DNA from: Cyanophora paradoxa CCMP329
Taxonomy: Eukaryota; Plantae; Glaucophyta
DNA length: 64,000 nt
Reading direction: 5' to 3'
Assembly: GCA_004431415.1 (NCBI GenBank)
Contig: QPMI01000163.1
Coordinates: forward strand, 129,499-193,498
Numbering within the stretch: position 1 is the first letter of the stretch; the number at the start of each line of letters is the position of its first letter. Positions 3,201-64,000 of this stretch are shown one piece after another. Below the pieces are notes generated by a model, which saw only the letters and a program-made list of their open reading frames with translations, was not told where the DNA came from and made no database searches. The position numbers and the translations under genes are program-made.

Positions 3201-3523
3201 CCCGCCCGCCCTCCACTCCTCGCTGAGGCGCAACGCGGCCAGACATTCCCGAGACGGCCAAGGTCGTGCGCTCCTGGAGCCGCCTGCGGAGCGCCCTGCA
3301 CGGGGCCGAGGCGCGCGCCCCCGCCGGAGCGGCGGAGGCGGAGGCGGGGCCGGCGGGGGCCGGGGGCGGGCTGGAGGCCTTCGCGTGCCTGCGGGGCTGC
3401 CTGGGGAGCCGGCCCCTGGGGCCCCCGGGCTCCGGGGAGGTCAAGGGCCTCCCTCCGGCCCCCGCCCCCGCCCCGGCCCCGGAGGCGCCCCCCGACACCG
3501 GCCACCACTGCATTCTCGCGTAG
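269..3523 (+). CDS. F-box/leucine-rich-repeat protein (multi-exon)
   Basis: N-terminal F-box-like LVEFLSSNVLIEIFKHLP followed by LRR-type segments (FPALRDLELRL, LPALQRLSLSG, CPNLRSLQLRL, LRELTLRGCSRL, LPALRAADLEL) across exons. The stop is approximate. Confidence 0.65.
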
Positions 3524-41437: not shown

Positions 41438-42888
41438 AACCTAACCGCGCTCAACCTCTGACGCAGGGTACAGCTCGAATTCGCCAAAATGCGCGTGGTT
41501 GTCCCCTGGCTTCGCACCGCCCAGCGCGATGCGCGGTACGCGCTCCAGCGTCGAGGAGTGCTCACGCGGCCGCCAGTAGACCCGCCCGCGGTCGCCCTCT
41601 CGAGCATTCGGCACGGCTCGCACGACACACCGCACCGGCGCCCGCCGATCTGCATCTTGGTACGAAACGACAAGCGCATTGCGCACGTGTCTAGTTGACC
41701 CCAGGCGCAGCACGGACTGGTGGGTGATCTAAACGCGCGCCAGTTCTGCTTGCCCGTCTGAAGCCCTGCTCAGTTCGGCGCGCTGCCCAACTGGCGAGGG
41801 TTCATTTCGAAGATGGACGCGGAATACGCGAACGAGCCTTTGCAGCAGCGCCCGTTCGAGACGGCATACATGTTGGACGGTGAGACCACATTGACGCCTC
41901 GAACTTCAGTTCTCATGACGCTGCCTCGCAGCTCGCAATCACGGCACTTCCGAACATCACCCTGACATGTCGTACGGTTCGAGAACGTTTGTTTGTGCTC
42001 GCACAACTTACAGCCAACGGCCTGCTCTTTGCAGAGCTAATGGCACATGATTTGCGTGCTTGGATGGGATGCCACAACCTCTCATCGGCAATATGGCTGG
42101 GTAATAATGATCATTGCAATTGTATTTGGTTATCAAGAGGTTTTTTAGGTTGTACCATATGCTCACCCCTGGGTGCTCGCAGGGCACTCCATGGGGGGAA
42201 AGGCTGTTGCACAGGTGCGTGCAGCATACTGCTTGATTGAGGTCGATTTGTCCTTATCCCAAGTTTTTCATGCAGCTTGCACTGGAAAATCCGTCCCTGG
42301 TGTCCGCCTTGATCGTTGTGGACATAGCACCAGTCACATATGATCACAATGCTATGCTTGATGGCGTAATTCGGCCTCTGAGAAAGTATGTAAAAGTGCT
42401 GATTTTCTGTTGCGCAAACAATCATGAGCCTGACCTGTCCACAGTGTCGACCTCTCAACTCTCAAATCTCGAGCAGATGCAGATGCAACATTAGCCCCGC
42501 ATGTGAAGGTGTGCATGATGAGCTGACAATACTTTTCCCATTTCTGAAACCTATTTCATTCCAGGACCCAAGAGTGCGAGGCTTTCTTCTCACGAATCTC
42601 GTTCACTCTGCCACTGGATATAAATGGAGGGTTAATCTCGAGGTCAGATCTATTGTTGGTTCTCAGCACAGTTTCACATCCACCATGATCCTATGCATGT
42701 GCAGTCAATTGAGCGATGCTGGCCATCACTGGCATCTTTTCCATCTAGGTGGATTCAAGCAAACACAGCTGGTCAGGGTGTGCAGAAGTTAGACTCTTTA
42801 GATATTTGTCCTTCCACTAATTTGTATTTGTTCTCTCCTCAGGACGTACCTATGATGGTCCAACTTTATTCATCCGAGGATCAGCATC

Positions 42889-43040
42889 CGTAAGGAGCTG
42901 TTTCGCATGTCGCAGACGGCCCCGGACGGACCTCGACGGGCCGAAAACGGCGCGACCTTTTGGACATCCCGCTAGTTCGCGAGCTTTAACAATGGATGGA
43001 ATTTGAATTTTGAACACGGCCGTGTCACGGCGGCTATCAG
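42889..43040 (+). repeat. Element left end, 152-bp direct repeat (copy 1)
   Basis: Matches 46159-46310 by eye. Confidence 0.93.
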
Positions 43041-43201
43041 CCGGCTGAGTTCGAGTTCGAGCTGGCTAGACCAAATTCTATATCCCCCCAAGCCATCTCC
43101 CCCCCCTTCCAAGCCACGGCCAGCTGCAGCTAGATTGCGGCCAGCCACGGACTTGCGCGGGAAAAGCAAAAGCGCTTATAGCTTAGCGTTCGGCGATCGA
43201 G

Positions 43202-44861
43202 ATGCCGCTCTCTGTGCTGTCTGCCAAGGTCGGCTCAGCGTTCGGTTCCATTAGAGCGTGGCTGGGCGGCGCCAGCGATGGCAGGCCGCGGCACGGCCAG
43301 ATTGGCGGCAGCACCTGCGGCAGCCAGGACGACCTCGGCGAGGACGTGAATCCAGACGACTTTGGCGACGCAGCTTTGAGCGAGCAAGTCGTTCAGCCTG
43401 CGCATGCAGCGCCAGCTGCGCATGCGACGGCCGCGGTCGCGCTGGCGCCTCCCGCGGCGGAGCCGGCGGGCGGGAGCGACTCCCCACAAGTCTCGCCAGT
43501 ACGCTCAGAGCTCGAGCAGAGCCCCGGCAGCGGCTGCTGTGAGACGCCAGGGACGCCTTTGGGGGGGTACGCCTGTACAGCCGTGTACGCCGCCTGTCGC
43601 AGCTGCCTCATCAGCGACCCCCGTGTACACGCCTGATCGCCCGCGTCGCAAGCGGGTAGTAGCTGCGCCCTCGCAATCGCAGCCTTCGCATGATCAGCCG
43701 GCCACGCCTCCACGCACGCAGCCGCCGGCGGCAGCGGCCTCGCCAGCGACCCCCGTGGACATGCCTAAGCGCGTGAGTCGCAAGCGGGCAGCGGCGGCGA
43801 CCTCCCAGCCTTCGCCCGCGGCGGCACCGAGCGAGCAATATGAGGATCCCTTCGTTGCCATGGAGCGGTATATGGACGATCCCTCTGTCGCGCCGTCGCC
43901 TGCCAGCTCAGCCGCGAAGAAGCCAGCCCGAAGAAGCCCGCCACGTCCACCAAGCAGCAGTGCAAGCGGCGCAAGTGCGATGTCGAGATGACGGGCGAGG
44001 AGGAAGATCGATTCACCCCTGGGACAAGCCCGGGCGGCACCGCTTTCGCATCGAGGAGGAGGACGCCGCACTCTATCGGAGGCTCACCGGCTGCAAGCGG
44101 GTTTCCGATGCGGTTCGCATGGCGTCCAAGCTCCTTGAAGCGATCGAGTACCTTCAGCAGCGTGTGCGCGCGCCGTTTCACGCCGCCGTGCGCTTCGCCC
44201 GCAGCTTGCCTCGCTGATTCGGGCCGCAGGATGTCCTAGACAAGGGTCTAACTGGCGCGGAGCTCGCCAATCAACTGAAGGCGAAAGTCGACGTGTTCCT
44301 CCGTGCACCGGCGCAGCGTGAGGAGCTCCAACAGAAGTGCAGCTCCCTGGAGCGGGAGCTCCCTGATCTGCGGTGGGCCAACAGGGAGAAGCAGCGGCAG
44401 ATCGCTCAACGGGAGGAGAAGATCGCTCAGCTGGAGAAGGAGATGATGCAGCTCAACGCCAGTCTGGTGAGCCCGCCGGCCGCCGCGCCGCCCGCGCCGC
44501 CGGCGCCCGCAATGCGCTGCTGACGGCGGTCCCTCCGGCGCCCGCAGAGAGCGACTCGGGTCAAAAACCTCGAAGAGGAGTGCGAGGAGCTGCAGAACCA
44601 GAACGCTGCGCTGCAGACGAAGGTGGATGACTTGGAAAACAAGGTCCGCGATTGCCCACACGCGTGCGTGCGCCCGCTGGCGCGTAACGCGGCGCGGCGC
44701 AGGTCTCAAGGATGAAGAGGAATTGGGACTTGGAGTTGGAGCGTGAGGCGAAGGTGTGGCGGAAGGAGGAGCGCATGTACATAAAGGAGGTGGAGGAGCT
44801 GGAGGCCGTTATCGAGTATCTCTACATGAGGGACGTGCTCATGCGGGAACCCGGGGCCTAG
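43202..44861 (+). pseudogene. Transposon ORF1: low-complexity N-terminus plus long coiled coil, frameshifted
   Basis: MPLSVLSAKV... with frame jumps near 43560 and 43960. Spliced exons give REELQQKCSSLERE...IAQREEKIAQLEKE, KNLEEECEELQNQNAALQTKVDDLENK and ...LYMRDVLMREPGA*. Confidence 0.6.
43309..43484 (+). repeat. 176-bp segment repeated in inverted orientation at 46310-46485
   Basis: Reverse-complement match; the peptide NPDDFGDAALSEQVVQPAHAAP appears on opposite strands in the ORF track. Confidence 0.93.
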
Positions 44862-45149
44862 GGTCGCAGGGTGGGTCGCCGCGGTCCAGCAGCTACACGC
44901 TGCTGTGCCGCCGGAGACGTCGCCTTTCGAGGCGCCCGCCATCGGGCGCTAGCCCCGGCCCGCTCGCTTCGTCCTGCATAGCTAGAGCTCTCATCGGATG
45001 AGAAAAATTTGTGTTCCTTTTGCGCATGCGTCGCCCACACGACAGCCGGGCGGGGACGCGGGGCGCGGCTGGGTTGGCTAACTGTGCGTGCATCCGGAGC
45101 CTCCGAGCAAGCCTAGCCTATAAGCTCGGCGACGCTGAGCTAGGTGCGC

Positions 45150-45284
45150 CCGGCGCGCCTGGTAATCTGCTCGGGAAGGTCGGAACGGCTTGGGCACGGA
45201 ACCGGGGTCGGCCGCAAAGGCGGACCGTGCCAGACCCAATCGGCGCTGAGCTACGCCGGCGCGCCTGGTAATCTGCTCGGGAAG
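45150..45284 (+). repeat. 29-bp direct repeat pair inside the element
   Basis: CCGGCGCGCCTGGTAATCTGCTCGGGAAG at 45150-45178 and 45256-45284. Confidence 0.85.
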
Positions 45285-46158
45285 CTCGGGATGAGTCAAG
45301 GCCTCGCACCTGGGGCTGGCAATCCATGCACTGCGGCAAGCAGCCGCTGCCCCACCGACCTCGTCTCGCAGAAGCGGGTCACGGAGATGAAGGAAGACCG
45401 CGTGAAGCGCCGCGGGCGCTCTCGTGGCATGCCGGGCCGGGCCGGGCGTATGCGTACCCGGTTGGCCAGCGGAGGAAACTCGGCTGACTGAGCGGCTCGC
45501 GCTTTCGACAACGTGGCACTGTGGCACTGTAGTACACCTGGCGAGGCGCACGCCGCGACAACGATTCGGCGAGGCGCACGCCCTCGCCCGCGAACTTGGA
45601 ACATACGCACGCCTGCCCTGGATCGCGGACCGAGCCTCGGAGACTTCCGCCCTCTCCGAGGCTCATGGCTGAAGCTGCGATAGCATGGTGCCGGCTGGCT
45701 GAGGCCGCCCGTGCCGGAGCAGCTGCAGCCGGGGCCAAGTGGCTGGCCGGCGCCTTAAGCGCGCGGCTGCACTGCGAGCGGGAGCTGGGCTCGCTGTCGG
45801 CGGCAATCTTATCCGCTCTCAAGGTTTCGCAAGGCTGCGAGCGCGCGGCGACCCCGGTATCGCGTTCGCAATTTTTGATCTGCCAGGGAATCTGCACTCC
45901 GAGGCTTGCGATTGAAGCACGGCAGCCTCGTATCTTGATTAGAACTTTTTATTCAAGATGTAGAGGCGTCACACGGCGTTATTTAGTGCCCTGCACAAAG
46001 CCCCCGCGATGGGCCCATTTAACCCGTCATACCATATGACTCATCATACGCCTATACACTACGTTACAGCTAGTCTTCTGCTGACTTTTGGCCCTTCCAA
46101 ATTGGGCCCATCGCCCCAGGAGCTGGGAGACATCGAAAATCGGGACGAGATCCTGAGG

Positions 46159-46485
46159 CGTAAGGAGCTGTTTCGCATGTCGCAGACGGCCCCGGACGGA
46201 CCTCGACGGGCCGAAAACGGCGCGACCTTTTGGACATCCCGCTAGTTCGCGAGCTTTAACAATGGATGGAATTTGAATTTTGAACACGGCCGTGTCACGG
46301 CGGCTATCAGGGAGTCGCTCCCGCCCGCCGGCTCCGCCGCGGGAGGCGCCAGCGCGACCGCGGCCGTCGCATGCGCAGCTGGCGCTGCATGCGCAGGCTG
46401 AACGACTTGCTCGCTCAAAGCTGCGTCGCCAAAGTCGTCTGGATTCACGTCCTCGCCGAGGTCGTCCTGGCTGCCGCAGGTGCTG
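46159..46485. repeat. Internal copy of the left end (46159-46310) fused to an inverted ORF1 fragment (46310-46485)
   Basis: Direct sequence comparison with 42889-43040 and 43309-43484. Confidence 0.93.
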
Positions 46486-47832
46486 GGAGACAGGAGCAGC
46501 AGGGCCGCGGGATCGGGACGGCCTCCCTCCAGCCAGCGAACAGAGAATCCGCACCCCCGAGCACGACGCCAACGCCCTCCTGCAGCCGCTCCCGAACAGC
46601 ATGCTGCCCGTCGCTGCCGTCGAGGTGAGAAGCCCGCGACACCTCGCCTCAGCGGACGCCAACGCGCACCTCAGGTCCGGCTCGACGACGCCCTGCACGG
46701 CATCAAGAGCTGGGTGGCCGGGTTCTTCGTCTACTTCTTCCTCGCCCTCGCCTGTGGTGCCTCCGAGGACCAGCAGAAGCGCATCGAAGACCTGCAGCGT
46801 CATCTTCGCGATAAATACGCGCGGAACATCAAGTTCGAGAAGACCGAGAACGGGGCCACCTACAAGTTCTTCCAGAAGATCTCCGCCAACACCGCCAAGA
46901 AGATCCTGGAGGACCCCGAGGCGCCCGACACCCTCTTCAGCATCTGCTTCGGCGACAGTAAGGAGAGCTGGAGCGAGAAGACGAGGGGCATGCACGAGAT
47001 TTGGCAGCTCCGCCAGATCATCTACCAGTACGAGCGGAACATGAAGCCCGACGAGGAGGCGCGGCAGCAAGTTATCGAGGCCGTCGCCGAGCTCCAGGGC
47101 CTGATGGAGACACACTTCCCGTTATGGAAGATCTTCACACGCTACATGCACTCGACGCTTGCGCACCTCGCGTTCTGGGCGCGCGTCGACAACACGAACG
47201 CGCCCGGCCGTTGGAGCTGCGAGGTCATCGAGTCCTACATGGGCCTCCTTCGGCGCCTGCGACACACCGTCACGTCTCTCGGTGGCGGGTGGAACAAGGA
47301 CCTCGACATGCTCAAGCAGATCATGACGCACCAGCGGCGGCGCCTGGCGCTGTGGATGCGGAACATGACGGAGGCGAGCGCCGGCGGGAAGGACGCTGCC
47401 CACGCCGAGTACGACGCGCCCGTCGCCGCCAAGGCCTGGCCAGATGGGCCCTTCATCCCCCGACCTGCGGCCCGTCCCCACCGGTCAGCGGCTATGCAGG
47501 GCGAAGGGGCGGCGGCGGCGCCGCCGGGGGGCGAGGAGGTGGCAGCGGTGCCCCTGCCTGCGGACGAGGAGGAGATCGACGAGGATATTGAGCTGCAGGA
47601 GGGGGATCCGGTGCCGGAGGACGAGGTGCCCGAGGAGAGCGGGGACGAGGAGGAGGAGGAGGAGGAGACCGCCGAGTACGACGCCGAGGCAGAGGAGGAG
47701 GCGGAGGAGGAGATGGAGGCGGAGGATGAGGGCGCCAACATGCTCGATTTCGATGATAGGGCCCTAGCAGAGGTTCTAGCAGACGATCTAGCGGAGGGGG
47801 AAATAGACGAAATGGATTTGGACCAGACATAG
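46486..47832 (+). pseudogene. 5'-truncated RAG1/Transib-like transposase (C-terminal core plus acidic tail)
   Basis: Intron at 46625-46674. Motifs DALH (46687-46698), LQRHLRDK, KISANTAKKIL, LMETHF, FTRYMHSTLAH and GRWSCEVIES...LLRRLR occur in RAG1 order. Confidence 0.8.
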
Positions 47833-47845
47833 CGCACCTTGTAAC

Positions 47846-49874
47846 CTAGATAGTGCGATTCTCAGTAGCAGCTTCACGACTTTGCCCTCTTGCGCGCCGC
47901 CACCGCGGCCGCGAGCTGTGCCGCGCGATCCTTCCTGCTGCAGGATTAGGCGAGCAAGTAGCCGAGCGGGGGGCGAGGGGGAGGGGGCGCACTTGGGGAC
48001 CGAGGCGGATGCGGCGGGGGCAGGTAGGGCGGCAGCGGCCGGTGGGGCAGCAGCAGCAGGGGCCGACAGGGCGGCGACCGGCGGGCGGGGGCGGGCGGGG
48101 CGGCGGCGGCGGCGGCCGGCAGGGCGGCGGCGGCGGGGGCCGGCGGGGCGGCGACGGCGGGGCCGGCAGGGCGGCGGCGGCGGGGGCCGGCAGGGCGGCG
48201 GCGGCAGGTTCTGAAGGGGCTGCTTCGGGGACAGGCGGCGCCTTGGCGACGGTGTTGGCGCCGGCGCGGCACCGGCGCGGGCGCTTCACGGGGACAGCCG
48301 CGAGGGCCCCGCGAGGCTGGCGATGCGCTCGCCGTCGGGGCCGTACTCGTAGCTCGGAAGCTCGAGCGTGACGTGCCCACCTTTCCTGCCCGAGCGCTTC
48401 GTGGCCACGATCCGACCGGGACCTGCCGCGCCCAAGGAGCAGAGCTTCGTAAGCGAGCGGCGCGGCGAGGGCGGGCCGGGCGCACGCTCGTCGAACTGGA
48501 CGACGTCATGGGAGCCCGTGTGGCGCGGCACGATTAAGCCGCCGTACGCCTTCTCGACGGTGACGGTCTGCATCTCGCTGTGCTTCCGGATCGCCTTCCC
48601 GTCCGCGTCCCGCTTGCAGACGCGCTTGGACGCTTGCGCCACGCCGGAGGGACCGAGAACAGCTGCAAAGAGGTCGGAAAAAGAACAGCGAGCGGGAAAA
48701 AGGAAGCGGCTTCCACCAGCAGCGGTCTCGCGGTCCGGAAGCTCGATAACGAAGCGATTCGCCGCCGGCAGCTTGTCAACCGGGATCGGCTGGCCCGTCT
48801 TCGGGTCGATGGGCGTGGCGACGTGCGCGACCTGCGCCACGATGTTCTCCTGCGATGCGCACCGTTAGAGGATAGGAAAAAGAACTTCGAACGAGTCATA
48901 AGAGCCGCAGACCAACATTGCCGGCCCGGCCACCGGGATCTTGACGTTGACAAGCTGCGTCCCGGTCTTCCGGCGCTTGAGGGCGTTCGCGGCGGCGTCC
49001 TGAAGGTAGCCAATCGCCTCCACGCGCTCCTCCGGCCTCGACAGCGGCCGGAGGAAGCACGCCATCTTCTTCTTCGCCACTCGCTTGAGCCTCGCGTTGA
49101 AGGCGAGGGCGACGTCGAACTGGAAGGAGCCGTCGCCCGGGAACGTCATGATTTGCTTACAGACGTAGATGTGGGGATCGGCGTGGTTGAGGGCTTTGTA
49201 CTCGTCCGCGGCCACCACCTTCGCGGGTGCGTGAACCTGCGCGCACGGGCATCGGACGCTGGAACGGGGCGCGGGCGCGGCGGGCGGACCGTCACGTTCG
49301 AGTAGTAGATGAGGTGGTTTGCGATGGCCACGGCTGCCTGCTCCCCGTCTGCCTTGATGATCACGCTGCCGAGCCCGCAGTCCTTCACATCGGAGTCCTC
49401 CGGGCGCACGAAGCGCCGAAGGATGACGCCGTTGACGGAGTAGTTGAAGTCGCCGCGCTTCGCCTTCGTCTGTGTTGGGAACTCGCCCTCGACTCGCGCC
49501 AAAATCGTTTCACCTGGGCGCGGGAAATGGAAGGGCTTCGGGCGAACGACGCTGAGTTCTGGACACAGCTGGGTGTCTGAGCTAACTGAACAGATGACGA
49601 AGTCGCCAAGGCGAACGTGGTAGGCGCGGCCGCTGGTGTCCAGGCAGCGGACCGTTGCCGCGGGGTGCTCGCCCTTGAGGATGTCGAGGTCAGGGAGCTT
49701 GGGCTCCTTCGCCTTGCGCGCCTGCTGAGTGATCTTGTTGACACGCTTCATGTTGCCCTTGCCGGCCCACGAGCTGCTGCTGTCGGGTCGCTTGCCGTGC
49801 CAGCGGTGCCGACGTCGGGCCTCGTCGAAGCCGTCATCCCAGAGGCTGGGTTCCTTTCGCTTTGACTGCTTCAT
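47846..49874 (-). CDS. Transposon-encoded BAH-like domain protein, convergent with the transposase
   Basis: SGRAYHVRLGDFVIC, ILARVE, VILRRFVRPED, AKVVAADEY and IYVC follow the BAH pattern. About 4 introns. The stop is at 48286 or, with a frameshift, about 47846. Confidence 0.65.
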
Positions 49875-51092
49875 GCACGGCGGCGTGCAGGAATGCTCGC
49901 GCTCGGGCGTGCGCGATGGCGGGAAGCTAGCTAGTCCGGCCTAGCCGAGGGAAGCTGACTAGCAAGCCGGCCTGCTGACCGTTACTGTGACCGTTGTGGC
50001 CGCGTGTGTACGCCACTGTGTACGAGGCCAAGTTCGAGCTCAAGTTTGCGCTGGGCTAATTTCATTGGCGGAAGAAGTTAACAATGGGCGGGGCGTGACG
50101 CAAACTCCGTTCAGTTTGAAACGATCTGACTACATTCTGCCTGAACATGAGGACACAATCAAGGCCCTCTTTCCAAGAGCTGAAATAAAAACCATCGAAG
50201 GAGCAGGCAAGTCTTGAAGTCTTAGAGTCAAGACCACTGACACAGAAGTTCTGAGTTTCCTCCTGCAGGCCACTGGGTGCACAGCGAGAAGCCTGCTGAA
50301 CTTGCGCAAGTGCTTCATCGCTTTCTGCAGAAAGCCTACATCTTCGAAGGCAACCATTGAATTGGTCATGTGCATCGGACCCCAAAGCTTCAACAAGCAG
50401 CCAAAAAAAATATTTGGTTTGTTGAAGCAGGCGAAGGGCAGGCATGCAAGACGAAATTGTGGAATGCATTCCTCCCCGCCCAGCAACCTAGCTATAGGGG
50501 GGGCGAACAAGGTCGAGCCGGCCATGCAAGCCGGGGCTCGAGCCAGGGGGGGGAGAGGCGGCCTCTGACGGAAACAGTGCTAGCTCATTTAATTTCTAGC
50601 TCGTGTCGCGGGCCTGAGTCATCGATATCAAATACAGGCTAGCCTGCCTCTATTCTGTAAGATTATGTGCATTCCGCATATATCCGCACGAGCTATCGCT
50701 AGAGGCCAGAGTTTCTTCGAGCGCCGAAGTCCGGGACCGGGTACCACCCCCCCCTTAGGAGGGCTCGAGCCAGCTCGAACCTGGAACGGGCCGGCTCGAG
50801 CCAGCTCAAGCCGGGGGTTTCAAGCTCGAGCCGCAGCTCTAGTGCACTCTAGTGCTGATCCACCATGAGAAAACGTTAATGCGGCACTTCCCTTTTTGCT
50901 CTGCCATTCAGTCCTTTTGTGTCTTCTTACCCACCGTGAAAAACACCATAATTTGCATAAACACATTACGGTACACTGCGCCACGACTGCAACGTGACTA
51001 AGCGGAGCGGCGTTGTTCGGTTTATTCCAACGCATCGGCGCCTAATCTAGTGACAGACACGGAACAGCGCCGGCACGCGAGAAAAAGGCCCA

Positions 51093-52709
51093 CTACGCCT
51101 TGGAGAGCACACCAGAGTAGATGGTGGAGCTAGTGTACGAGGTCGGGAGCTTCATCTTCTCGGGGTCCTTGAACGAAGCATCCTCAATCGCCGAGCGCGA
51201 GAAGAGCAGGATCACACCGAAGAGCGCTGGAACAAAGATCAGAAAAGGAATATATGGCCGGCTCTTTGATGAGCTCACCCTTCGAGAAGGTGTCGACAAC
51301 GGCGTACGAGACGATCTCGGCCGCAAGGGAGATGGCGTGCGTGCCGGTGGCGATGATCCAGATAAGCGGGTACGCGAACCAGGCGATGATGGAGATGATG
51401 ATGAGGATGTTGTAGGTCTGCTCGCTCGTGAGCGTAGACCCTACAGTCAGAGGAACATGCCGCACCTTCTCGACCTCCGGGGACTTCTCGCGGGCGTTCT
51501 TGCGGAGAACGGTCACCCACGCGACGATGATGGGGATGAAGCACATGTTGGAGATGCCGAACCAGCCCCACTTGGTGCCGGTGCTGAACAAGACACGTTC
51601 AGAATTTAACGATCCCAATAGAGCGATAAAACAGCCGCTGTGCTCACATGGAGAGGGCGCCCATGAGGCCAGTGCCGACCATGAGCATGCCAGAGAGAGC
51701 CAGACCAATGGTCAGAGCCTTGGTTGCGCTAGCCAACAGGCACAGGTTCAGGATGATGAGCGGCACGGTCAGGAACCTGAGCCAAGATGTAAGACAAATG
51801 AAGGCCACACTAACACGAACTGTGCCACTGACCAGTCAATGTAGCGCGCATAGTAGAACACGCGGTACGGGCTGAAGTCGCCGTTCTGCGACGCATCTGA
51901 GCACGAGTTTGCGCAAACTGGAGCCCACATCTGCTACGCACCGACCAGGTGTCGAACAGGGCAACAGAGCCCTGGCCGCGGGCCATGCAGTAGTACGCCA
52001 TCGTGGAAATGCCAGAGTACAGGGTGGTGATGTAGTGGAAGCGGCGCTTGTGCTCCTCACGGCGGAGGGTGAGGATCAGGAAGAGGGTGAACATCGCCGC
52101 CTGGATGCCGAACTCAATCCAGAAGAAGACCTGGCCGCGCTCGGCGGCGTCCTCCGGCGAGTAGAAGTCGGGGCCGAGGCCGGTAATGCGGTTGTAGCAC
52201 GTCCGCTGGATAGCGAGCTGCACCGACTCCGGGTCCTTCAGGTACGAGCCCGCGTAGAAGGACGCGAACTGATCGTAGGTGAAGGAGCACTGGCCGTTCG
52301 GGACGAACGCCGACTGACGGTTCTTGTTGTTCAGCGCGTAAGTCTGGTACCACCGGGCGAAGGTGGGGGACATCTCCTGGCCGGGCAGGGGGGCCGGCTC
52401 GCCAGTGTTGGTGTCGAAGAGCACCGTCTGGCTGCCATACATCTGGTTGAGGGTCTGGGCCTGGTCGAAGGTGAGGGCACCGTTGTTGTTGAGCGGCAGA
52501 AGCGGATCCACGCGATTGCCGGCCGCGTCGGCAACCTTCTGGACCAGCGGCTGGCCGCCGGGCACGGTCACGCCGGCGACGCGGGTGGTCGCGGTGCCAT
52601 CAACGATAGTGTTGGTGCGGGGGTTGGTCTGCAGGTCAAAGACATGGCTGAGGCCAGAGTCGGCAATGTTGCCGGCCATCTGGGGGGCCGACACTTGCAG
52701 GAGGACCAT
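51093..52709 (-). CDS. Microbial (type 1) rhodopsin with about 190-aa N-terminal extension
   Basis: RRFHYIT, AYYCMARGQG, YYARYIDW|FLTVPLIILNL, MVGTGLMGAL, WFAYPLIW, and the retinal lysine in YAVVDTFSK. Confidence 0.95.
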
Positions 52710-54034
52710 CGTTTATTCTGCCAACGGCAACGCGCGGCGCAGTCAGTAACGGCCTCGCAGTGCTACTAATGTAACAGCTAGCTGGCTGCGGGAGGGCGCT
52801 GCGGGAGAGGCAGACCTGTTGACTGCGCAGTCCGCAGTTCTTTACCGACTGGCGGTGCACTAACTTGGTGCGGTACCCGTCCCTGGTGGCTCCTCCCCTC
52901 CAGCTTCCTCCCCCCCTTTACTTCGATTCCCGGCGAGTCTACTTCAGAGAACCGCTCCGCGTCCTTCGAATTCCACCGGGCGATGGGCGTCTGCAAGCGA
53001 GTGACGCAGCAGAGCAGCTAAAGCACAGCAGTGAGAGCAGGCGAAGCGCCGAGCACTGCAGCTGGTACGAAGCCCTTCCCGCTGCTGCACAGCCCGAAGC
53101 CCGAGGCGCTGCTGCACAGCCCGAAGCTATATCAGCCCGACGCGTGCACGTGATCGGCGCCGCGCGGCCGCATGCGCAGAGGCCGAGCTCGAGGAGCCGA
53201 GCTCGCAGATCTAGATCTAGAGGCCGTGGCTCTACGTCGACGTCCTGGGCCGGGCCGGCGCCATGCATATGGCCACGCGTACGTATACGTCCACTCGATC
53301 GATCGGTGCGCGCGTATGCGGAGCTGCTCCCCGGGGCCTGCGATGCAACAATACGCTTTCGCTAGCGCTCAGGCCTAGGCCGTTGCATTGCAATTGGGGA
53401 CCTTATGCTGGACGGAGCCTTGGCCTCATGCTAAAGCTGGACCTTGCGCTCGCCTCAACGGTCAACATGCGCTCGCCTTGCGCTAGCGCTCGCCTTTAAA
53501 GCTTGCAATAGACTCGATCGCGAATTAATATTGCGCTCTCAGAGTCTGATGACATCGCAACCGGCACGTGACATGTACATGTACATCGCGTGCACTGCGG
53601 CACGGTCATGATCACGCACGCCCACGGTCATGATCACGCACGCCACGACTGTCCGATACATTATCGACTCACACGTACCGTACTGAATAAAAAATTGCCT
53701 CAGTGCCGCAGTACCAACGCCACGGTCATCTTGTGCCCTCAGGCCTAAAATGAAAAATTCGAAACCGCGGGCCGCCGGGCCGGGCCGCTTGAACTCGGAA
53801 GCCTAGCTGAAAATAAAACTGCCTCACCGTGGCACTGCAGCTGCGCATGCCAGGCTGCCAGGCTGGCCATGGTTCTAATTTTACAACTAAAAACCAGTAA
53901 GCTTGATTTCCAAAGTTCAAGCTCTGATTAGATTGCTGGCTGTACATGTACGAACTTGAGAGGCGGGGCTTAAGCTTGCCGCAGCGCGACCAGCGGCCTT
54001 CTAGATTCGATAAGGCGGGCTCATGCCATAATGA

Positions 54035-56871
54035 TCAGGCGGCGGAGACGGCGGCGGCGGCGGCGGGGCCCCAGGCGGTGGCGGGGGCGGGGGCGGCGCC
54101 GAGGGCGTCGAGGGCGCGGCGGGCCTTGTCGGCGCAGAGCCCCCACTCCTCGCGGTGCGCCCCGCAGGCCGCCTCGAGAAGGCGAGCGCCAGCAGCGTGC
54201 CCCACACGCCTCGGGGACCGCCGCGGGGCGGGCGGCGGCGAGGGCGGCGAGGGGCGGCCGAGGGCGGCGGCGAGGGCCGGGGTGAGGGCCCACAAGCCCG
54301 AGGCGGCCTGCAGGGCGAGCACCGCGTCGTGCCGCCGGCCGCCCTCCGCCCCGCGGCCGCCCGGCGCCGCCTCCTCCGCGCCCGCGGGCGTCCCGCGGTT
54401 GAGCTCGGCGCGCGCCGCCGCCGGGCTCGCGGCCGGGCTCGAGCTCGGGGGCCCCGCGGCGCCCCTCTCCTTCTTGCGGAAGAGGCCGCCGACGGACTGC
54501 GCCGGCGCCGCGGGTCAGGCGCGCCGGAGAGGGCGCGCGGGGCGGGGCGCACGGCGACGGCGGAGGCGAGGGCGGCGGCGGCTGAGCCGGCGAGGCCGGG
54601 GGCGCCCTTGGGGCGGGCAGACGAGGTGGCGCGGACAAGGGTGCGGCAGTGGGCGTCCGAGCGCTTCAAACGGGCGGCGGAGCGCTTGAACTCGGCGGCC
54701 TCCACTTCGAGCTCCTCGCACTGCTCCTGCAGCATCACCGCGTCCACCGCCGCATCGCCGCCGGCGGCGAGACGGCCCTCCGGCAGCGCGCCAGCGCATG
54801 CACGCCTGCGGCTCGGCGCCGGCCGCTCCCGCTCCCGCTCCTGCGCGAGGCGGGCGTCGGCGGCGCTCGGGCGCGCGGGGCGGGCGGGGCGGGGCGGGCG
54901 GACGCGGAGGGCAGGAGGGGACGAGGGCGAGGCGGGCCGGCTCGTGGGCGGGGCGGCACCGTCGCGGCGCTCGACGGCGACGAAGGCCGTCTCGCGCGTG
55001 GCGAGCGAGTGGCGGAGGCCGAGCTCGAGGATGCGCCGCCGCGCCGCCGCCCGTCGGGGGCCTCCTCAGCTCCCGCACCGCCGCCCGCGCCGCCAGCGCC
55101 GTCACCCGCCCCGCCGGCCCCGCGGGGGCACGGCCACGGAGAAGGCGACGGGGCCGGCGGGGCCGCGGGCGGTGAGGGTGAGGAGGCGGGAGGGCCCCGT
55201 GCCGGCGGGAGGAGGGCGTAGGCGAGGAGGCGCTCGCCGCGGGGGCGGCGGGGAGGGCGGCGGGGCCTGCGCGGCGCCGGGAGGCCCCAGTCGAGGCCGC
55301 TCGCGAGCGCCGGCAGCAGCGCGCGCCGCAGCTGCCCCAGCGCCGCCCCCTCCACCCGCTCCCCGTCCGCGATGAAGGCCGCGTGCCCGCGCCCCGCCCG
55401 CGCGAGCCCGTTCACCAGGTGCTCCGACGCCCCGGCCCCGATCCCGAGGGCGAAGAGGCGCGTGCCGGCGGGGGCCGCCCGCACCGCCGCGATGCACTCC
55501 TCCGTGTTGCTGACCTCGCCGTCGGTGAGGAGGAAGAGGTGGCGGGGCCGGCCGGCGGGGGCCGGGGCGGCGAGGAGGGCGCGGAGCGGGGCGAGCAGCT
55601 CGGTGCCGCCGAGGTCGGCCTGGAGGGCGGCGACGGCACGGGCCGCCTCGGCGAGGCTGGCGTCGCCGTAGGGCGCCGGGGCGGCGAAGAGGCGCCGGAA
55701 GGAGGAGCCGAAGCCGACGAGGTCGAAGGCGGAGCCCGGGGGCAGCGCGCGCAGCATGATCTGCAGCGCGTTCTTCGTCTGCTCCATCTTCGAGCCGGCC
55801 ATCGAGCCGCTGCGGTCGACGAGGAAGAGGAACTCGCCGGGGGCCGGCGGCGCCCCCGCCTCGAACTCGGGGCAGAGGCAGAGGGCGAGGCAGGCGGAGC
55901 CGTCCTCGGCGCGCTCGGCCCAGGCGTGCGGGGCGCGCGGCGCCGCGTGCGCCACCTCGAGCACCAGCGCCCCGTCCATCGGCACCGCCCGCGCCAGCCG
56001 CACCCGCCCCTCCCGCCCCGCCACCGTCACCTCTGCCCCCGCGTCGGCCGGCGCGCGGCGCGGGGTCCGGGGCGGGGCGGGCGGACCGAGGTCGGGGGCG
56101 TGGGTCGGGGAGGCGATGGAGGCGATGGGCGCGGGGGCCACCACGTGTAGCTCCAGGCTCATCGCGTACGGCACCTGCGCGCGCCAGCGGGCCGCGGGCG
56201 TCGGCGGGCGGCGGGCGCGGTGGGACGGGCGCGGGGCCGCACGTGAGGGGCGACGCCGAGGGGATTGACGGCGGCGGCCTCCTCGGGGGCGGTGCGCGCC
56301 GGCGTGTACTTGGCGGGGATCGTGGTGGGGAGCGTGAAGCGCGCCGCCCCGTCCGCCGTCATCGGTAGCTCGCACACGTACGAGAGCGCGAGCTCCGCCT
56401 CCTGCCCCGCCAGCAGGTTCCCCGCGCTCGCCGTGAACACGTCCGGCGCCTCCCGCTCCAGGAGGTACGCCCCGTGCCCGCCCGCGATCGCCGCCGAGTA
56501 CTCCTCCGCCTGCGCCGGCGACGCTGAGTGGCGGCGCGGGCGGGCGAGCGCGGGGGGGCGGGCGGGCAGCGCACGGCCTTCTCCCGCTCGCGGATAACGC
56601 CGGCGATGCGACGGTCGCCGACGCGCGCCTCCCAGCCGATCACCGCCGCGCCCTCGGGCAGCGGGAAGCGGAAGACCGCCTCGATCGGGCCCGCGCTCTC
56701 GTTCTTGTACACCTGCCGGACTGCGCGGGGCGCGGGCCGCCGTCAGTGCTTGATCGCATGGAGGAGCGCTGGCAGCAACCAGCACGCACTCGAGATGTCG
56801 CTGAAGAAGGTGTCGATGGTTCCCGTCACGTACACGGCCCGCAGCGGGCTCGGGGCCTTCTCGGACGCCAT
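54035..56871 (-). CDS. VIT + von Willebrand A domain protein (VWA5A/BCSC-1-like)
   Basis: YKNESAGPIEAVFRFPLPEGAAV, DVFTASAGNL, MIDAS FLVDRSGSM, ADLGGTEL, FLLTDGEV, FALGIG and C-terminal LALQAASGLW...EEW. Confidence 0.92.
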
Positions 56872-57051
56872 GCTGTTAACGCTCGCTGTGGGCGGACTAG
56901 ATGCCGATGCAGAGGATCACTCTCGCCGGTTCGGATGGAATGAGGCCGATGGGCGGCCGCGCGGGAGAGCATGGCGCTCGGCTCAGCCCGTACGACTCAG
57001 CGCCTCAGGTCCGTACGAAGGGCGAACGAAGCTCAAGCTCAAGCCTCGTGA

Positions 57052-57120
57052 TCAAGCCTCTAGCCTCAAGCCTCAAGCCTCAAGCCTCAAGCCTCAAGCC
57101 TCAAGCCTCAAGCCTCAAGC
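57052..57120 (+). repeat. (TCAAGCC)n heptamer tandem repeat, about 10 units
   Basis: Directly visible, upstream of the VWA5A start. Confidence 0.95.
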
Positions 57121-57224
57121 TTGACCGAGGCCTTCAGCGGCTTGCGAATTCGATCGCACTGAACGTTGACGAAAAAGCATACGAGAACTGTCACTACCCT
57201 ACCTAGAGCCATCTAGCCTGCATC

Positions 57225-60200
57225 TCAGTCGGAGGGGGCCGCCGCGGCGAGGATGAGGTGGGCGGGGGCCTCGCCGGCGGCGGCGAGGTCGGCGGCCATG
57301 GCGAGGGCGGCGTCCAGGCCGGCCGCCCACGCCGCCGTCTCGAAGAGCGGCGCCGCCGGCCCGCGGCCCCGCGGCAGGGCCCCGGGCCCCAGGGCGGCCA
57401 GGTCCTCGTACGCCTTCAGGCTGCGCGCCACGGGGGCCCGCCCGGGCGGGGCCAGCCGCGCTGCCTCCTGCGCCCCGTCCACCTCGCAGCTGGCGCCCCC
57501 GAGGCCGAGTGCACCATCCTGCGGCCCCGGAGGTGAGCTCGAGGCGCGGCTGGGTGCGGGCCCGGCCGGGTGCCGTCCACGGGGCGCACGCGGAGGCGAC
57601 GCGGGAGGAGATGGAGTCGCCCCGCAGCGTCACCGCCGGCACCCCGCTGCGGGGGCGGTGAGGGGGGCGGTGTGGAGATGGGGGACGCTGCCGGGGGCGT
57701 GGGTACCCGAAGAGGTAGTCGAGGAGGGTGGTCACGCCGTTGTACTGCGCGGGGCGGTGTTGGGGGCGGGAAGGGGCGAAAGGAGGGGGTGCGCACGAGG
57801 GGCGTGTCGAGGTAGAGGTCGGCGAGGGCGGCGCGCCGCGCCTGCCGCGGCCCCGATCAGCGCGGGGGCGCGGGGCCTCGGCGGGGGCCGGGGGCGGGCC
57901 TGGGCGACGACGTCGGGGCGGCGCGGGGCGAAGAGGAGGCGGGAGGCGGGGAGGCCACGGGCGGCGAGCTGCGCGCCGGCCGCGGGGGCCACGTCGAGCT
58001 GCAGCTCCTCCAGCATCCACAGCACCGACGACGGCGACCGCCGCAGCGCGTTCCCCCACACCTGCCCCGCCACGCAGCTCAGGCGGGGCCGGGGCGAGCA
58101 GAGAGGCCCGGGCAGGGCGCACGTCCATGAGCTCGGGGTACAGCTTCACGGTCTGGTGGGGGGTGGGTACCGCTCGCGGGGGCGCGCGGGGATGGAGGGG
58201 TACGGGGGGCGGACCCGATGGTGGACGGCCAGCACGCGGGCCCCGGGGGGTAGCCCCTCCTCCTCACGGGAGGTCTGCTGCAGCGCCTCGCTGGAGAGTA
58301 TGCTCCGTAGGCTGCACCCTCGTCAGAAGCAGGGGAACGGATGCCGAGAGCGGGGCGGGCCTGTTCATGGCGATGGAGAGCGGGGGAGGGAGGACGAGGG
58401 CCTTCTCCGAGAGCTCCCCGAGGGCCGCCTCGGGGGCCGTCGACACGCGGTCCCCAAACCTGCCGCCCCCCCTCTCGCTGGGGTACGGCGCCAGCGGGGC
58501 GGGCGGGGCGGGGGTACAGGTAGTCGAAGAAGGGAGCGCCGGTGGAGCCGATGGTGGAGTGGAGCTGCACGGGGGCCGGCCGCAGCGCCGAAATTTCGGG
58601 GAGGTCACCCTGCGAGAAGGGGCACGGGTGAGGTGCGGCGGGAGTGGGACGGGGCGGGGCGGGGGCGGGGGCGGGGCGGGGCGGACGGCGGTCCAGAAGT
58701 CGAGGTGGACGAGGACGTGCGCCCCGTCGGTGTTGATCTGCTCGGCGATGCGCCGCGCGCTCCAGCCCCGCACGTCGTACTGCTTCGCCGCGGCGGCGGC
58801 GACCTCGCGCAGCACAGGGCTGTCGCCAAGGCCGAGCCCCTCCCAGCGGTTGTACACGTAGATCTCCACGCGGTTCCGGTCCTGCAGCCCGAAGACCTGC
58901 CGCCAGGACCATCCCATCGAGGTTTCCTGCGCCGCCATGAGCGCCGAGGCCCTGACAGACGGAAGGAGGCGGGCGCACCCCGAGATAGGAGCTGTAGTAG
59001 GCGATGCGGAGGCGGGGCGGGCCGGAGGGGGCGGCCGGCGGGAGGAGCGCGGACGGGGCCGGGAAGGGCGCGGCGTGGCCGGCGGCGGCGACCTGGCGGA
59101 GGAGGAAGCGGGCGGAGCGGACGAGGGCGGCGCGCTTGGCCGCCGCCGGCAGCGGCAGCGACATCGCCCTGCCCACCCCGTCGGCGCGGAAGCGCTGGAG
59201 AGAGGGGCCGGGGCGGACCACCAGGGGGTGATGGGCGCGGAGGCGGCGGCGGCCTCGGGCTGCGCCAGGAGCCACGCGACGCCCTCCAGCGCCTCCGCCA
59301 CCGCCTGCCGTCCCGTCAGCCCGAGCAGCAGCGGGCGGGCGAGGCGGCGGGGGCGCGCGCCTCGTCCCAGGAGTCCCAGACGAGGGCGCGGGAGAGGGCG
59401 AGGAGGCGGCCCGAGGCGGCAACGGCGCGCGTGCTCGGCTCCCGCGCCACCTCCTGCACAGGCGCCTCGATTTGAGGGAAGCAGCGGGCAGGAGGGCGGG
59501 GGACGCACGCGGAGGCGGGAGAAGTGGCGGGCGGCCGCCGCGGCGTCCCCTGTCGATGTCGCCGCCCCGCCTGCGCCCCCGCCGCGCCCCGTGAGCCGCG
59601 TACGCCGGGGCGTGGCGAGCGGGGGGAAGGGGCCGCGCCACGGAACCAGCGTGTGGTCTCCTCGAGGCGCGGCTCGAGCTCCTCGGCGATCGCGCACGCC
59701 GCCTCCACCGCCTCCTGCCGCCGCGCCTGCCCCGCCGCGTGAGGCTAGAAGGAGAAGGTGCGGGCGCTGGGAGGGCGGGGCGGGCCTGGGCGGCGGCGCG
59801 GCAGAGGTCGAGGAAGTGGTCGGCGCGGGGCGCGGCGGCCGCCCACGCCGCCTGGCGCGCCGCCACCTCGAGGGCCTCCTCCGTCCCACCACGCCGCCCC
59901 CGGCGCCCGGGACCAGGGTCGCCCCCTGCGCCCCGGCGAGCGCCTTGGCCGCCCCGTCGTGGGACGGGTCCGCCAGCAGCGCGCGGCGGAGCAGCACGGC
60001 CGCCGCCGCCTCGCCGCCGCCGCCCCCGCGAAGCGCCGGAGGAGGGCGGCGGCGTAGTACGCCTCGGCCGGCCCGCCGGGAGGGCGGCGGGGTGGGCGCC
60101 CGCAAGTCGCCCCGCCGCCTCGTAGAGCGACGCCGCCTCCGCGAGGCGGCCCGCCCCCGCCGCCCGCTCCGCCGCCTCCCACGCCCCGCCCGCCCCGTGC

Positions 60201-60812
60201 TCCTCCGCCCCCTCCGGCGAGGGCGAGGGCCGCGCCGTCGCCCCGCCCCCGAACAGCCGCCGCATGAGGCTCGGCGCGGCGCTCGGCTCCGGGGCGCCGC
60301 GCCGGCGCCTGCGCCTCCAGGGAACGGCGCGTCGGACCGGATGCGCGGGGCGGGGGCCAGCCAGCGGCCGGCGCTGGCGGGCGCGTGCGCCGCCTCGACC
60401 TCCGCCAGCGGCGCGCTTCGCCCCGTGACGCGCGCTGAGAGCGACACGCCGGCGCCCGCAGCATCCGCCCCGAAGGCCAGCCTCAGCTCATCCCCGTCGA
60501 CGGCCGCATCTGCGCGCGCCTGGAGCAGCCCTTCTCCGCTCCAGGACAGATTCGCAGCGCCGCTCGCCACCGCGCGCAGCCGCACGTCCGCGGCATCAGC
60601 CTGCAGCTCGAACGATACGAGGCACGGGCACTGCGCGCTCGCCGTCAGCATGTGCAGCCTGGCAGCGCGGGCACACGTCGGGAACGCACGCCGGGAACGG
60701 TCAGCTCGATCCACTCCGACTGCGTCAGGTTGAACTGCAGCGCGTTCACCCCCGTTGCGCTGATTGCGGCTGCGAGCACCGCCAGCGCTGCTATCAGCTG
60801 CAGACAGCGCAT
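57225..60812 (-). CDS. GT41 (OGT/SPINDLY-like) glycosyltransferase with TPR-like region and N-terminal signal peptide
   Basis: RLRIAYYSS, DRNRVEIYVY, IAEQINTDGAHVLVHL, ALRPAPVQ, STGAPFFDY, SEKALVLP, KLYPE, SVLWML, YNGVTT and VPAVTLRGDSISSRVAS. N-terminus MRCLQLIAALAVLAAAISATGVNA. Confidence 0.88.
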
Positions 60813-61159
60813 TCGAGCCCCCGGGCGCGTTCAAATTCGTGCCATCGATAGCCGCGCCGCCGCTTCTCGCGCCGCGAATCGCATACCCAGCTCAGCGCAA
60901 TGTCGAACGCATCCGGCGGCTCCCCGACCGGCCGCGCGCTGATCGCAGACCTGCAACGGTGTGTGCGAGCGGTATGATGCGCCTGGTCCGCCGCGCCGAA
61001 ACAAACGTCGTTCGCAGGCGCTCCGCGCTCTTGCACCGCGCTTCGAACGGGTTCCAGGCGCGCTGAGAGCGCTCACACGTCCCTCCCGCGAGCGCCGCTG
61101 CCCTTGCGCGCCTTGCCGAGCGGCCGCAGGTCCTCGCGCTGAGCGAGGGCGGGCGGGAG

Positions 61160-63086
61160 ATGAGCGCGGAGCAAGGTTCGCCGCTCCGCCGCGCTGCCGG
61201 CTCGGCTGAGCTGACGCGGGGCCTTGCGCAGCGGCGGAGGTGTGTCGGGGGCGGCTCGCGCAGCGGGAGGCGACGCCGCACAAGGAGCTCGAGTTCGGGG
61301 GCGGCCTTTGGGCCCGCTACCACGAGTCCGCGCGGCCGCTCGGGGCCTCCCGCCCCGCACGACGGTGCCGACGCGGGCGCAGGATGAAGGCGCAGGCGAT
61401 GGCGGAGTTCGTGGAGCGCGTCGGAACGGGACGCGCGGCGGCGGCGCCCGTCGACCTCTCCGGCGTCAGTGCGCGCCGATGCCCCAGGGAGCGTCGGCCG
61501 CGGGTGCGACGCGGCGGGCCCCGCAGACCCGTACGCGCTGCTCGTCGTGCCCGAGGCATCCTCCCCCGTGCGCCCCGCGCCCCGCCCCAGCGCGCCGCCT
61601 GGGGCCGAGCGAGCAGTGCCGGGGGCAGTGGGCGGAGTACGCGACGCTGGGGTGGCGGGGGCGGCCTCGGGCGGGCGGCGAGGGCCCGACCTTCGGCGGG
61701 GCCGGGCGGGGGGCGGCCGCGGGGGCGCCGGGGTGGACCTGGAGGCCCTCGCGGGGGAGCTGCGGGCCCGAAGGACCCGCTCGCCGCCGTCCGCGACGCC
61801 AAGCGGTGAGACGCCGCGCAGGGCCGCCCGCGCGGGCTCCCCTCGTGACGGGCGGGCAGGCGGGCATCGGACGTGGTGGCGACGAGCAACGGCTGGGAGG
61901 TCGTCGTCCCCGACGGCCTCTCCCTCCAGCACGGCCCGCCCCGCCCCGCCCGCGCCTCGCAACCTCCCGCCGGCGCGCCGACGCGGGGCGGCAGCGGCGG
62001 AGGTGCTGCGGCAGCGGCTCGAGCAGCGGCGCCGCACCCCGCACGCCGAGTACGGCGGCGGGCCCCGCGCCCGTTACGGCCAGTGCGCCAGTTCTTCTTC
62101 CCGCCTGTCCGGCCCGTCTCATCCTCTCCATGCTTCGAAGGGAGCGGGCTGCGGCGGAGGCAGAGTTCGTGGAGCGGTTCGCGGCGCCCTTCCCGCCCGA
62201 CGTCCGCCACGCCGGTGCGCTCCCCCGTCCCCCGCACATCGCGGGCCGTCTGGAGCGGGCGGGGGCAGATCGCGGGGCGGTACTCGTGGTGCCGCAGGAG
62301 GACCACCCGGTACCCCGCCCCCTCGGGCCTCGCCCGGCGGCTGAGGGGCGCAGATGGCGGCGCTGGCGGAGGCCGGCCTCGCGGGGGCGGCCTCGGCCAG
62401 CCGCCCCGCCCCGCCCGCCCGCCCCTCTCCGCCACCCAGCGCGCCCTCCGCGCCGCCGGCCGTCCGCCCCCTCCCGCCCCCCCGCACGCATCCTTCTCTG
62501 GCCCCTGACGCTGCGCTGTGTGGGCAGCGGCGGGGCTGGGGGCGGGGTTCGCGGCGCGGGAGCGGGTGGCGACGGGCGCCGGCTTCACGATCGAGATCCC
62601 CGAGGGATGAGCGACGAGGAGGCGCTCGAGATCGCCCGCGAGCGCCTCTGGCAGCGCTACGCCAGCGCGGGGCCCCCTGGCACGCCAGCGCCCCGGAGGA
62701 GCCCTGGGCCCCGCCGCCCGCGCCCACGAGGCCAAGGCCGGCCCCCGCCTCTCCTTGCTCCCCCGCGGCATGCCGCCAGTGACGCGGCGCGTGCAGGCGC
62801 GGGCCTACGAGGAGTTCATCGCCCTCAAGGCGGGGCCCGAGGCCCCCACGGCCCCGGCGTGCGCCCCGCCGGCCCTCCCCCGCCCCCCGCGCCGCCCACG
62901 GCCCCGCGCAGGCACCCGGAGCGGGGCGGGCTGGGCCCGCTGCGCGCCGTGCCCCGCGAGGTCCCCCGCTCGCCCCGCCCCCTCCCGCGCCCCCTGACCC
63001 CGTCCAGGGCTACCCCCTCGCCCCCTCCTTCGGCGCCGGCCCGGGCTTCCGCCGCGCCCCGTGAGCGCTCGCGCCCCGCGATGTAA
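61160..63086 (+). CDS. Hypothetical spliced protein with an internal duplication
   Basis: Exon-like segments AMAEFVER...ALLVVPE and AEAEFVER...AVLVVPQE. Family not recognised and ends approximate. Confidence 0.45.
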
Positions 63087-63127
63087 CGCGTGTCTCTGTG
63101 TCCGAAAGAAAGGCGAGCGCGGGGGCG

Positions 63128-64000
63128 TCAGCGGGCGGCGGCCTTGGGGGTGTGGGGGAGGACGGAGAGGAGGCGGGGCAGGGGGCGGGTGCCTCCCGGG
63201 GAGGGGGGCCCCTGGGTCGCCTCCCCCTCCACCGCGTCCCCGCGCCGGAAGGGGTGCGCCGCCGCCAGCTCCGGCGGCACGCACACCGCCTCCCCCGCCT
63301 CCGTCTTCACCTGCGCTCCGCAGTGTTCAACGGGCGGGGCGGGCGGGCGGGCCGGGCGGGGGTGCGGGGCGGACCTCGAAGCCGCCGATGATCTTCTCGA
63401 GGCGGCCTTTTACGCGCCACGTGCGCGGCGCCTCCTCCTCCGCCTCGGCCTCCCGCGCCCGCTTCCGCCCCGCCTCCCGCGGCGGGCTCACCGCCGCCGC
63501 CCCCCGCGGCGGGGACACCGGCGGCTCCGCGGCGGCCTCCGCCCCGCCCAGCAGCGGGCTGATGATCCCGCCTGCAATGCCGGATCCCTGCCGGGGTGCC
63601 GCGTGAGGGCGGGGAGGGCGGGCCGCAGGGGCGGGGAGCGAGAGGGACCAGGCGCAGGGGCGACACGGGAGCGTCGGGATTGGCGGTGGGAATCTGCAGC
63701 CCGCCCCTGCGCCCCGGTGAGGGCCCAGGCGGGGCGGGGCGGGGGCCGTGCGCGGCGCACCCCGGCGGGGGCGGCGAGGAGGGGGGCGCGGAGTGCATGG
63801 GGCGGGGCGGGGAGACGGACTGCCTGGGGCGGGGCGGGGAGATGGGGCGGATAGGTTCCGCGCAGACGATGCGGGGAGGGGAGATGGAGACTCTAGCTGG
63901 CGCCCGGGGGCGGGGCCGGCGGCCGGGGAAGGGGCCTGGCGGGGCCGCCGGCGGTCGGGGGCGACGCCTGGCGGGGCCGGCTGGGGAGGAGCGAGCGACC
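63128..64000 (-). CDS. 3' part of a hypothetical gene entering from the right edge
   Basis: Spliced RTWRVKGRLEKIIGGFE|VKTEAGEAVCVPP...FRRGDAVEG (OB-fold-like pattern) and an NLS-like RKRAR. Confidence 0.45.

Follow-up and report, generated by a model that had tools for sequence, protein, structure and literature searches.

An internally deleted copy of a RAG1-like transposon family in Cyanophora paradoxa and the spliced antisense RNA over its transposase gene

Transposons of the CMCT clade share the motifs C(2)C and H(3-4)H throughout, together with target-site duplications (TSDs) of 2-5 bp and termini that are CA..TG "in most cases", though not obligatorily (PMC12730594). C(2)C, LH and H(4)H combined with a 3-4 bp TSD are considered hallmarks of Chapaev (PMC4079192), and the motifs discussed below are common to EnSpm, Chapaev, Transib, Plavaka, ESTA, Lanisha and RAG1 (PMC12730594, PMC4079192). 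Some lineages of this clade carry chromatin-acting cargo such as TET/JBP, and the origins of RAG rest on few non-animal examples. Here we present an element of this kind in the glaucophyte Cyanophora paradoxa CCMP329, located at 42889..50123 of a 64,000-nucleotide stretch of contig QPMI01000163.1 (hereafter the window). We consider it moderately probable that this is a defective copy of a young cut-and-paste family of the CMCT clade, lying near RAG1L and Transib, in which antisense read-through may restrain the transposase. What the window copy adds is an empty site, the anatomy of a deletion and the antisense RNA.

The element, 7,235 bp long and given no strand as a whole, is flanked on the plus strand by two 3-bp TSD copies of sequence ATC (42886..42888 and 50124..50126) and interrupts a coding exon of a plus-strand host gene (41990..50330). 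This gene has the motifs GHSMGG, VDIAP and GHWVH, and we take it to encode an ABHD11/YbfF-like alpha/beta hydrolase; its short single exons had no match in Pfam. Removal of the element with one ATC restores the host frame (RTYDGPTLFIRGSASDYILPEH), in agreement with the discrete insertion proposed in an earlier reading made from the letters of the window (hereafter the sequence-only reading). The empty site is present in DNA run X2, in which a 12.3-kb host contig crosses 50124 and continues into non-element sequence, and in RNA run X20, where an intact transcript junction connects both halves of the host exon across one ATC; the sequencing runs compared may come from different strains. Since this site bears no scar, it represents an allele that was never filled, and the insertion into the ABHD11-like exon is recent in the assembled lineage, with the host exon intact in other cultures. 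The presence of a TSD rules out a Helitron.

The left terminus begins with CGT (42889..42900, plus strand) and the right terminus, delimited by sequence comparison and read contigs, ends with ACG (50112..50123, minus strand); they match at 7 of 12 positions, and neither a longer inverted repeat nor a CAC heptamer was found at the element ends. Contigs from other copies diverge exactly at both ends into other flanks, which indicates that the termini are correctly placed. Gene models of the transposase lie on 13 contigs, the model of the window itself being in EukProt, and a 230-residue core of the protein is identical on eight contigs. The depth of the element in run X2 is 1375-1875 against 58 for the flank, so that the copy number is roughly 25-30 by this coarse contig-based measure; depth is similar over the transposase gene and its convergent partner gene, which fits linkage of both across copies. 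The transposon family is young in C. paradoxa. Another gene model, P0014 (tig00021758), has the first exon of the coiled-coil gene described below fused to mid-transposase, and its sequence points to another internally deleted copy. The 10-mer TTAACAATGG occurs at 42986, 46256 and 50078, near both element ends and in direct rather than inverted orientation; it may be due to chance or represent a candidate binding site.

The 3' half of a RAG1-like transposase gene occupies 46496..47832 on the plus strand and encodes the LH histidine, zinc-binding histidines (at 47149 and 47164), the catalytic glutamate (at 47230) and an acidic tail, with a predicted sense intron at 46625-46674. All seven motifs that the sequence-only reading had aligned with the RAG1 core recur in order in one plus-strand frame (46687-47262), and its distances of 151 residues from the LH histidine to the first zinc histidine and of 22 residues from the second histidine to the glutamate were reproduced. 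The catalytic aspartates and CxxC, for which it had suggested searching full-length copies, are present in P0012, the full-length product of another copy, which has D418, D522, C535/C538, H606, H757/H762 and E784. The successive spacings of these residues are 104/13/68/151/5/22 in P0012 and, by hand count, 109/19/68/141/5/20 in FcoRAG1L. As judged from sequence and partial fold, full copies encode a DDE transposase of ~950 residues with a RAG1-type zinc domain. The C-terminus of the protein is an acidic low-complexity tail lacking the zinc motif CTT1 of RAG1L and subgroup I Transib, the corresponding tail of FcoRAG1L being CxxC-GH-C.

Comparison of features in the ESM Atlas gave scores of 0.94 for RAG1 clusters, RAG1 accounting for most of the named matches, and of 0.92 for DUF1280 (Chapaev), whose profile matches the transposase weakly (E 0.27 over 35 residues). 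A single-sequence structure model is usable at about residues 620-750, and the region matched by fold belongs to the part of the transposase encoded in the window. When 48,161 chains were searched with this model, the five best-ranked were chains of BbRAG1L and RAG1 at Z 8.7-10.3, and HzTransib reached 7.6; a second structure comparison, again led by RAG1 and BbRAG1L, gave Z up to 11.4, with a root-mean-square deviation of 3.9 over 149 residues. We conclude that the protein is a RAG1-fold DDE transposase. No relatives outside Cyanophora were retrieved by phmmer (1.8 billion representatives), by word searches or from metagenome and viral contigs; one foreign phmmer match, P0011, was rejected as an unrelated repeat protein, and the six matches of a degenerate pattern for the second-Asp motif of CthTransib were all due to chance.

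Because the whole CMCT clade has these catalytic and zinc motifs, likeness to RAG1 does not place the element in the RAG lineage. The element belongs to the CMCT clade itself, having DDE, C(2)C and H(3-4)H between the second D and E, and a TSD within the 2-5 bp range; it departs from the clade in its ends, which are CG..CG where most members have CA..TG, and in having no sequence relative found outside Cyanophora. With ProtoRAG/RAGL (BbeRAGL, FcoRAGL, AanRAGL; PMC9435367, PMC10629977) it shares the order and spacing of DDE and zinc ligands, the fold of the ZnB region and a convergent second gene, AanRAGL also residing in a unicellular alga; the RAGL core of DDE, CxxC and two zinc histidines is present in P0012, the window copy containing its C-terminal half only. 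In contrast to ProtoRAG/RAGL, the Cyanophora element has no kelch-PHD RAG2L, no terminal inverted repeats (TIRs) with CAC heptamers, an acidic tail instead of CTT1, a third gene, many introns and overlapping 3' gene ends, while its 3-bp TSD, verified against the empty site, differs from the 5-bp TSD of both ProtoRAG/RAGL and Transib. The search for RAG2L returned no kelch or PHD match on the partner exons, and their spliced product contains neither kelch repeats nor a Cys-rich PHD. The CGT...ACG ends without CAC, the 3-bp TSD and the lack of RAG2L exclude membership of ProtoRAG and of Transib. To call the architecture ProtoRAG-like, as the sequence-only reading did, is an overstatement, its motifs being CMCT-wide and a convergent transposase and accessory gene occurring also in maize MuDR (PMC3440606).

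Outside ProtoRAG, the element also falls short of Transib, EnSpm and Chapaev. The EnSpm/CACTA termini CAC(TA/TG) are missing and no Transposase_21 domain was found. Likeness to Transib (PMC9435367) consists of the fold match with HzTransib (Z 7.3-7.6) and of the Asp words RLAGDGT and FLVTGDYKFL, which resemble KLTGDGT and FFLGGDWKFL of CthTransib_0091, whereas TSD length, termini and two accessory genes set the Cyanophora element apart. The resemblance to Chapaev and Chapaev3 (PMC4079192) is made up of C(2)C, LH and H(4)H, the 3-bp TSD and the weak similarity to DUF1280; the ends are nevertheless CGT...ACG rather than the invariant CAC...GTG, the ATC target is not the TWA of Chapaev3, there is almost no TIR and extra genes are present. 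It is somewhat unlikely, in our opinion, that we are dealing with a divergent element of Chapaev, Lanisha or 'basal Transib' type, whose accessory genes would be ordinary ones and which would look RAG1-like only by virtue of the relatives for which structures have been solved. Such a possibility would accommodate the Chapaev hallmarks, the two DUF1280 signals and Asp words that are closer to CthTransib_0091 than to RAG1L, but it is opposed by the ends and target just mentioned, by the predominance of RAG1 among the named Atlas matches and by the Asp-to-Asp spacing, which at 104 is nearer to RAG1L (109) than to CthTransib_0091 (77; hand count). In the literature collection searched, which did not extend to Repbase, we found no paper linking Cyanophora with RAG1 or Transib. 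The proposal of a RAG1/Transib-related, multi-gene family that is apparently undescribed is supported by the Atlas and structure matches.

The partner gene runs on the minus strand (47788..49874) and has five exons, separated by introns 49237-49289, 48850-48912, 48663-48716 and 48423-48485. All four introns are seen as RNA joints, confirming the convergent, intron-containing gene that had been recognised previously, and its GC-rich part may contain further introns. With indel corrections supported by reads, the open reading frame (ORF) has 618 codons and its stop (47788-47790) falls within the last codons of the transposase; splicing of a 373-nt intron, described below, would extend the product to 653 residues and bring the stop beside the catalytic Glu codon. 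The protein has a Pro/Ala linker at residues 440-560 and a basic N-terminus that suggests a nuclear location. By eye, a BAH-like order of motifs (VRLGDFV, ILARV, RRFVRPED, AKVV-DEY, IYVCK) can be followed at residues ~85-225, a region spanning the first intron. The BAH-like nature assigned by the sequence-only reading was not backed by Pfam, NCBIfam, PDB sequences or the ESM Atlas, all queried exon by exon, nor by a failed model of exon 1 (pLDDT 32); these tests were weak because the domain is split across exons and homologues are lacking. We regard a BAH fold as plausible, at about an even chance. The convergent layout, the RAG1L-like spacing and fold, the motif order and the basic N-terminus would all suit an analogue of ProtoRAG in which RAG2L has been replaced by a BAH chromatin reader that would bind the transposase and direct it towards marked chromatin. 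We nonetheless consider this improbable, given that no tool supports BAH, there is no evidence of binding, the ends and TSD are not of RAG type, and the convergence seen also in MuDR is not specific to RAG.

The transposase gene is covered by a spliced antisense RNA on the minus strand (46496..47464), with introns 46614-46669, 46792-46859, 46947-46995 (or 46944), 47101-47166 and 47257-47331, which a linking intron of 373 nt (47465-47837, minus strand) joins to the partner transcript. The six joints read CT..AC and so correspond to minus-strand GT-AG introns; they were seen in three RNA runs, each of a different study, and not in the DNA run; the five short introns measure 49-75 nt, similar to those of the partner. 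Their interpretation as sense introns was rejected, since they end in CT..AC and their removal would eliminate conserved motifs; a coding role of the antisense exons was equally rejected, there being stops in all frames and no convincing ORF. The antisense RNA provides the only contigs over the transposase in the three studies. Its splicing appears uniform across them, with no sense or unspliced contig over the antisense introns in the three runs, and in every run the depth of all four bins is reproduced to within 4 units by one spliced contig (a bin of run X15, for instance, has 524.6 against an expectation of 524.6). The RNA extends 340-690 nt into sequence that the window copy has lost and therefore derives from full-length copies. 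Partner and transposase ORFs overlap at their 3' ends, leaving no room for a terminator.

The closest parallel is maize MuDR (PMC3440606), in which a convergent transposase and accessory gene are likewise accompanied by antisense RNA from failed termination between them; the transposase superfamily is unrelated, and the antisense RNA in Cyanophora contains at least six introns of its own and seems to be the predominant transcript over the transposase region. By analogy with this precedent, the antisense RNA could have a regulatory role in restraining the transposase, a proposition for which we see the arguments as evenly balanced. It might otherwise be passive, arising from termination failure of the partner, chance sites and a spliceosome suited to short introns, without regulation, and we rate the probability of this as just short of even. 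Of the four donors within the coding core, three lie where a His codon, CAC, is read in reverse, in one case that of a zinc ligand; they consequently need no selection of their own, so that splicing may be opportunistic. A passive origin would also explain the lack of a convincing ORF and the four or more introns behind the partner stop, and extra antisense RNA failed to suppress sense transcripts or silence the element in maize (PMC3440606). It fits less well with the uniform splicing over three studies and with the depth of the antisense RNA, which exceeds that of the partner in all three runs; this higher downstream depth may be due to an internal promoter or to 3' bias. A further minus-strand spliced RNA without convincing ORF (44900..45950; introns 45167-45225 and 45273-45359) is possibly the far end of the transposase antisense RNA and is very deep in run X20 (2000-3500).

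The window copy has lost the first ~555 transposase codons, and with them the first two catalytic Asp residues and CxxC, to an internal deletion whose place is taken by a filler of 356 bp (46140..46495, from sequence comparison and read contigs). The filler comprises 19 unplaced bases, the left end of the element duplicated exactly in direct orientation (46159-46310), the segment 43309-43484 duplicated exactly in inverted orientation (46310-46485) and 10 unplaced bases. Other copies carry different sequence between 46139 and 46496, and the right loose end encodes the SECSAVEVV stretch of P0012. As a deletion derivative of this kind the window copy is non-autonomous, and the structure of the filler makes gap repair with template switching the likely cause. 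That the rearrangement is an artefact of long-read assembly, the locus really holding a full-length copy, appears very unlikely to us. The window does contain several indel errors with respect to reads, and no contig among those listed crosses the filler junctions; run X2, however, is without the insertion and hence unable to show such junctions, one of which coincides exactly with an element terminus. Moreover, repair typically leaves short unplaced fillers, and P0014 indicates another internally deleted copy. Read contigs have extra bases at 44852, 45349, 45779, 45851, 48082, 48158 and 48303, seven sites which are probable long-read indel errors of the assembly, the last concealing the Pro/Ala-rich second half of the partner protein.

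The reading that we favour can be put together as follows. Full copies would make little transposase, which would cut at the CGT/ACG ends, the cleavage presumably proceeding by nick and hairpin on flanking DNA as RAG and Transib do (PMC10629977). Insertion would occur with a 3-bp stagger, of which the TSD itself is seen, and gap repair with template switches would delete the internal part, leaving a non-autonomous copy as in the window. The partner promoter would drive minus-strand transcription through the transposase; at the contig level the spliced product greatly exceeds sense mRNA, and this RNA could keep transposase low by transcriptional interference or as double-stranded RNA. The partner protein would most likely be a nuclear accessory factor. 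A bolder version, namely an active unnamed lineage at the RAG1L/Transib base that has no true TIRs, a BAH reader in place of RAG2L and a multi-intron read-through RNA as a brake, we regard as rather unlikely. The internal deletion, the third, coiled-coil gene, the overlapping ORFs, the minus-strand run-on and the non-RAG-type ends all go beyond what had been noticed from the sequence.

Several points weigh against our preferred reading. The transposase model is poor overall (mean pLDDT 43), its Foldseek E-values are not significant, and searches of Pfam, NCBIfam and PDB sequences with the transposase gave no match. To our knowledge, the PDB contains structures of no CMCT-clade members other than RAG1 and Transib, and consequently fold matches cannot place the lineage. 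The RNA contigs come without strand counts or start sites, the RNA nature of the runs is only guessed, and rare forms are dropped from contigs, so that sense mRNA of the transposase should be regarded as rare rather than absent. The family multiplies despite the antisense RNA. Finally, the triplet scars described below are not assignable to the RAG1-like family, as CACTA-like elements of this genome could also make them.

An element that moves in a cultured alga and combines a RAG1L-like core with other ends, a 3-bp stagger and other partners would make it possible to examine which features of RAG (heptamer reading, 5-bp stagger, dependence on RAG2) are ancestral and which can be uncoupled, and if the partner turns out to be a BAH protein, it would provide a second RAG1-type enzyme paired with a chromatin reader. 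The spliced antisense RNA offers a simple test case for transposon self-restraint, and an active native element would be a possible insertional mutagen for Cyanophora.

The third gene of the element, gene 1, encodes a spliced coiled-coil protein on the plus strand (43202..~44955), with a GT-AG intron near 44466-44546 seen in three RNA runs; the frameshifts that interrupt it in the window probably stem from errors in the assembly. The RNA at 44900-45950 overlaps its 3' end, and gene 1 thus also meets antisense RNA. Outside the element (1-42888 and 50124-64000), triplets of the form X-rc(X)-X number 172 against about 48 in shuffles (3.6-fold) and those of the form X-C-rc(X)-G-X 27 against about 4, the background being a rough two-letter block shuffle; this pattern agrees with scars left by hairpin-type excision of elements whose TSD is 3 bp long. 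The GC content of the host gene region (42000-43000 and 50100-51000) is 48-53%, the window elsewhere lying mostly at 60-84%. Just behind the host hydrolase gene, a spliced gene for a microbial rhodopsin is found on the minus strand (51184-52709; Pfam Bac_rhodopsin, E 2e-9).

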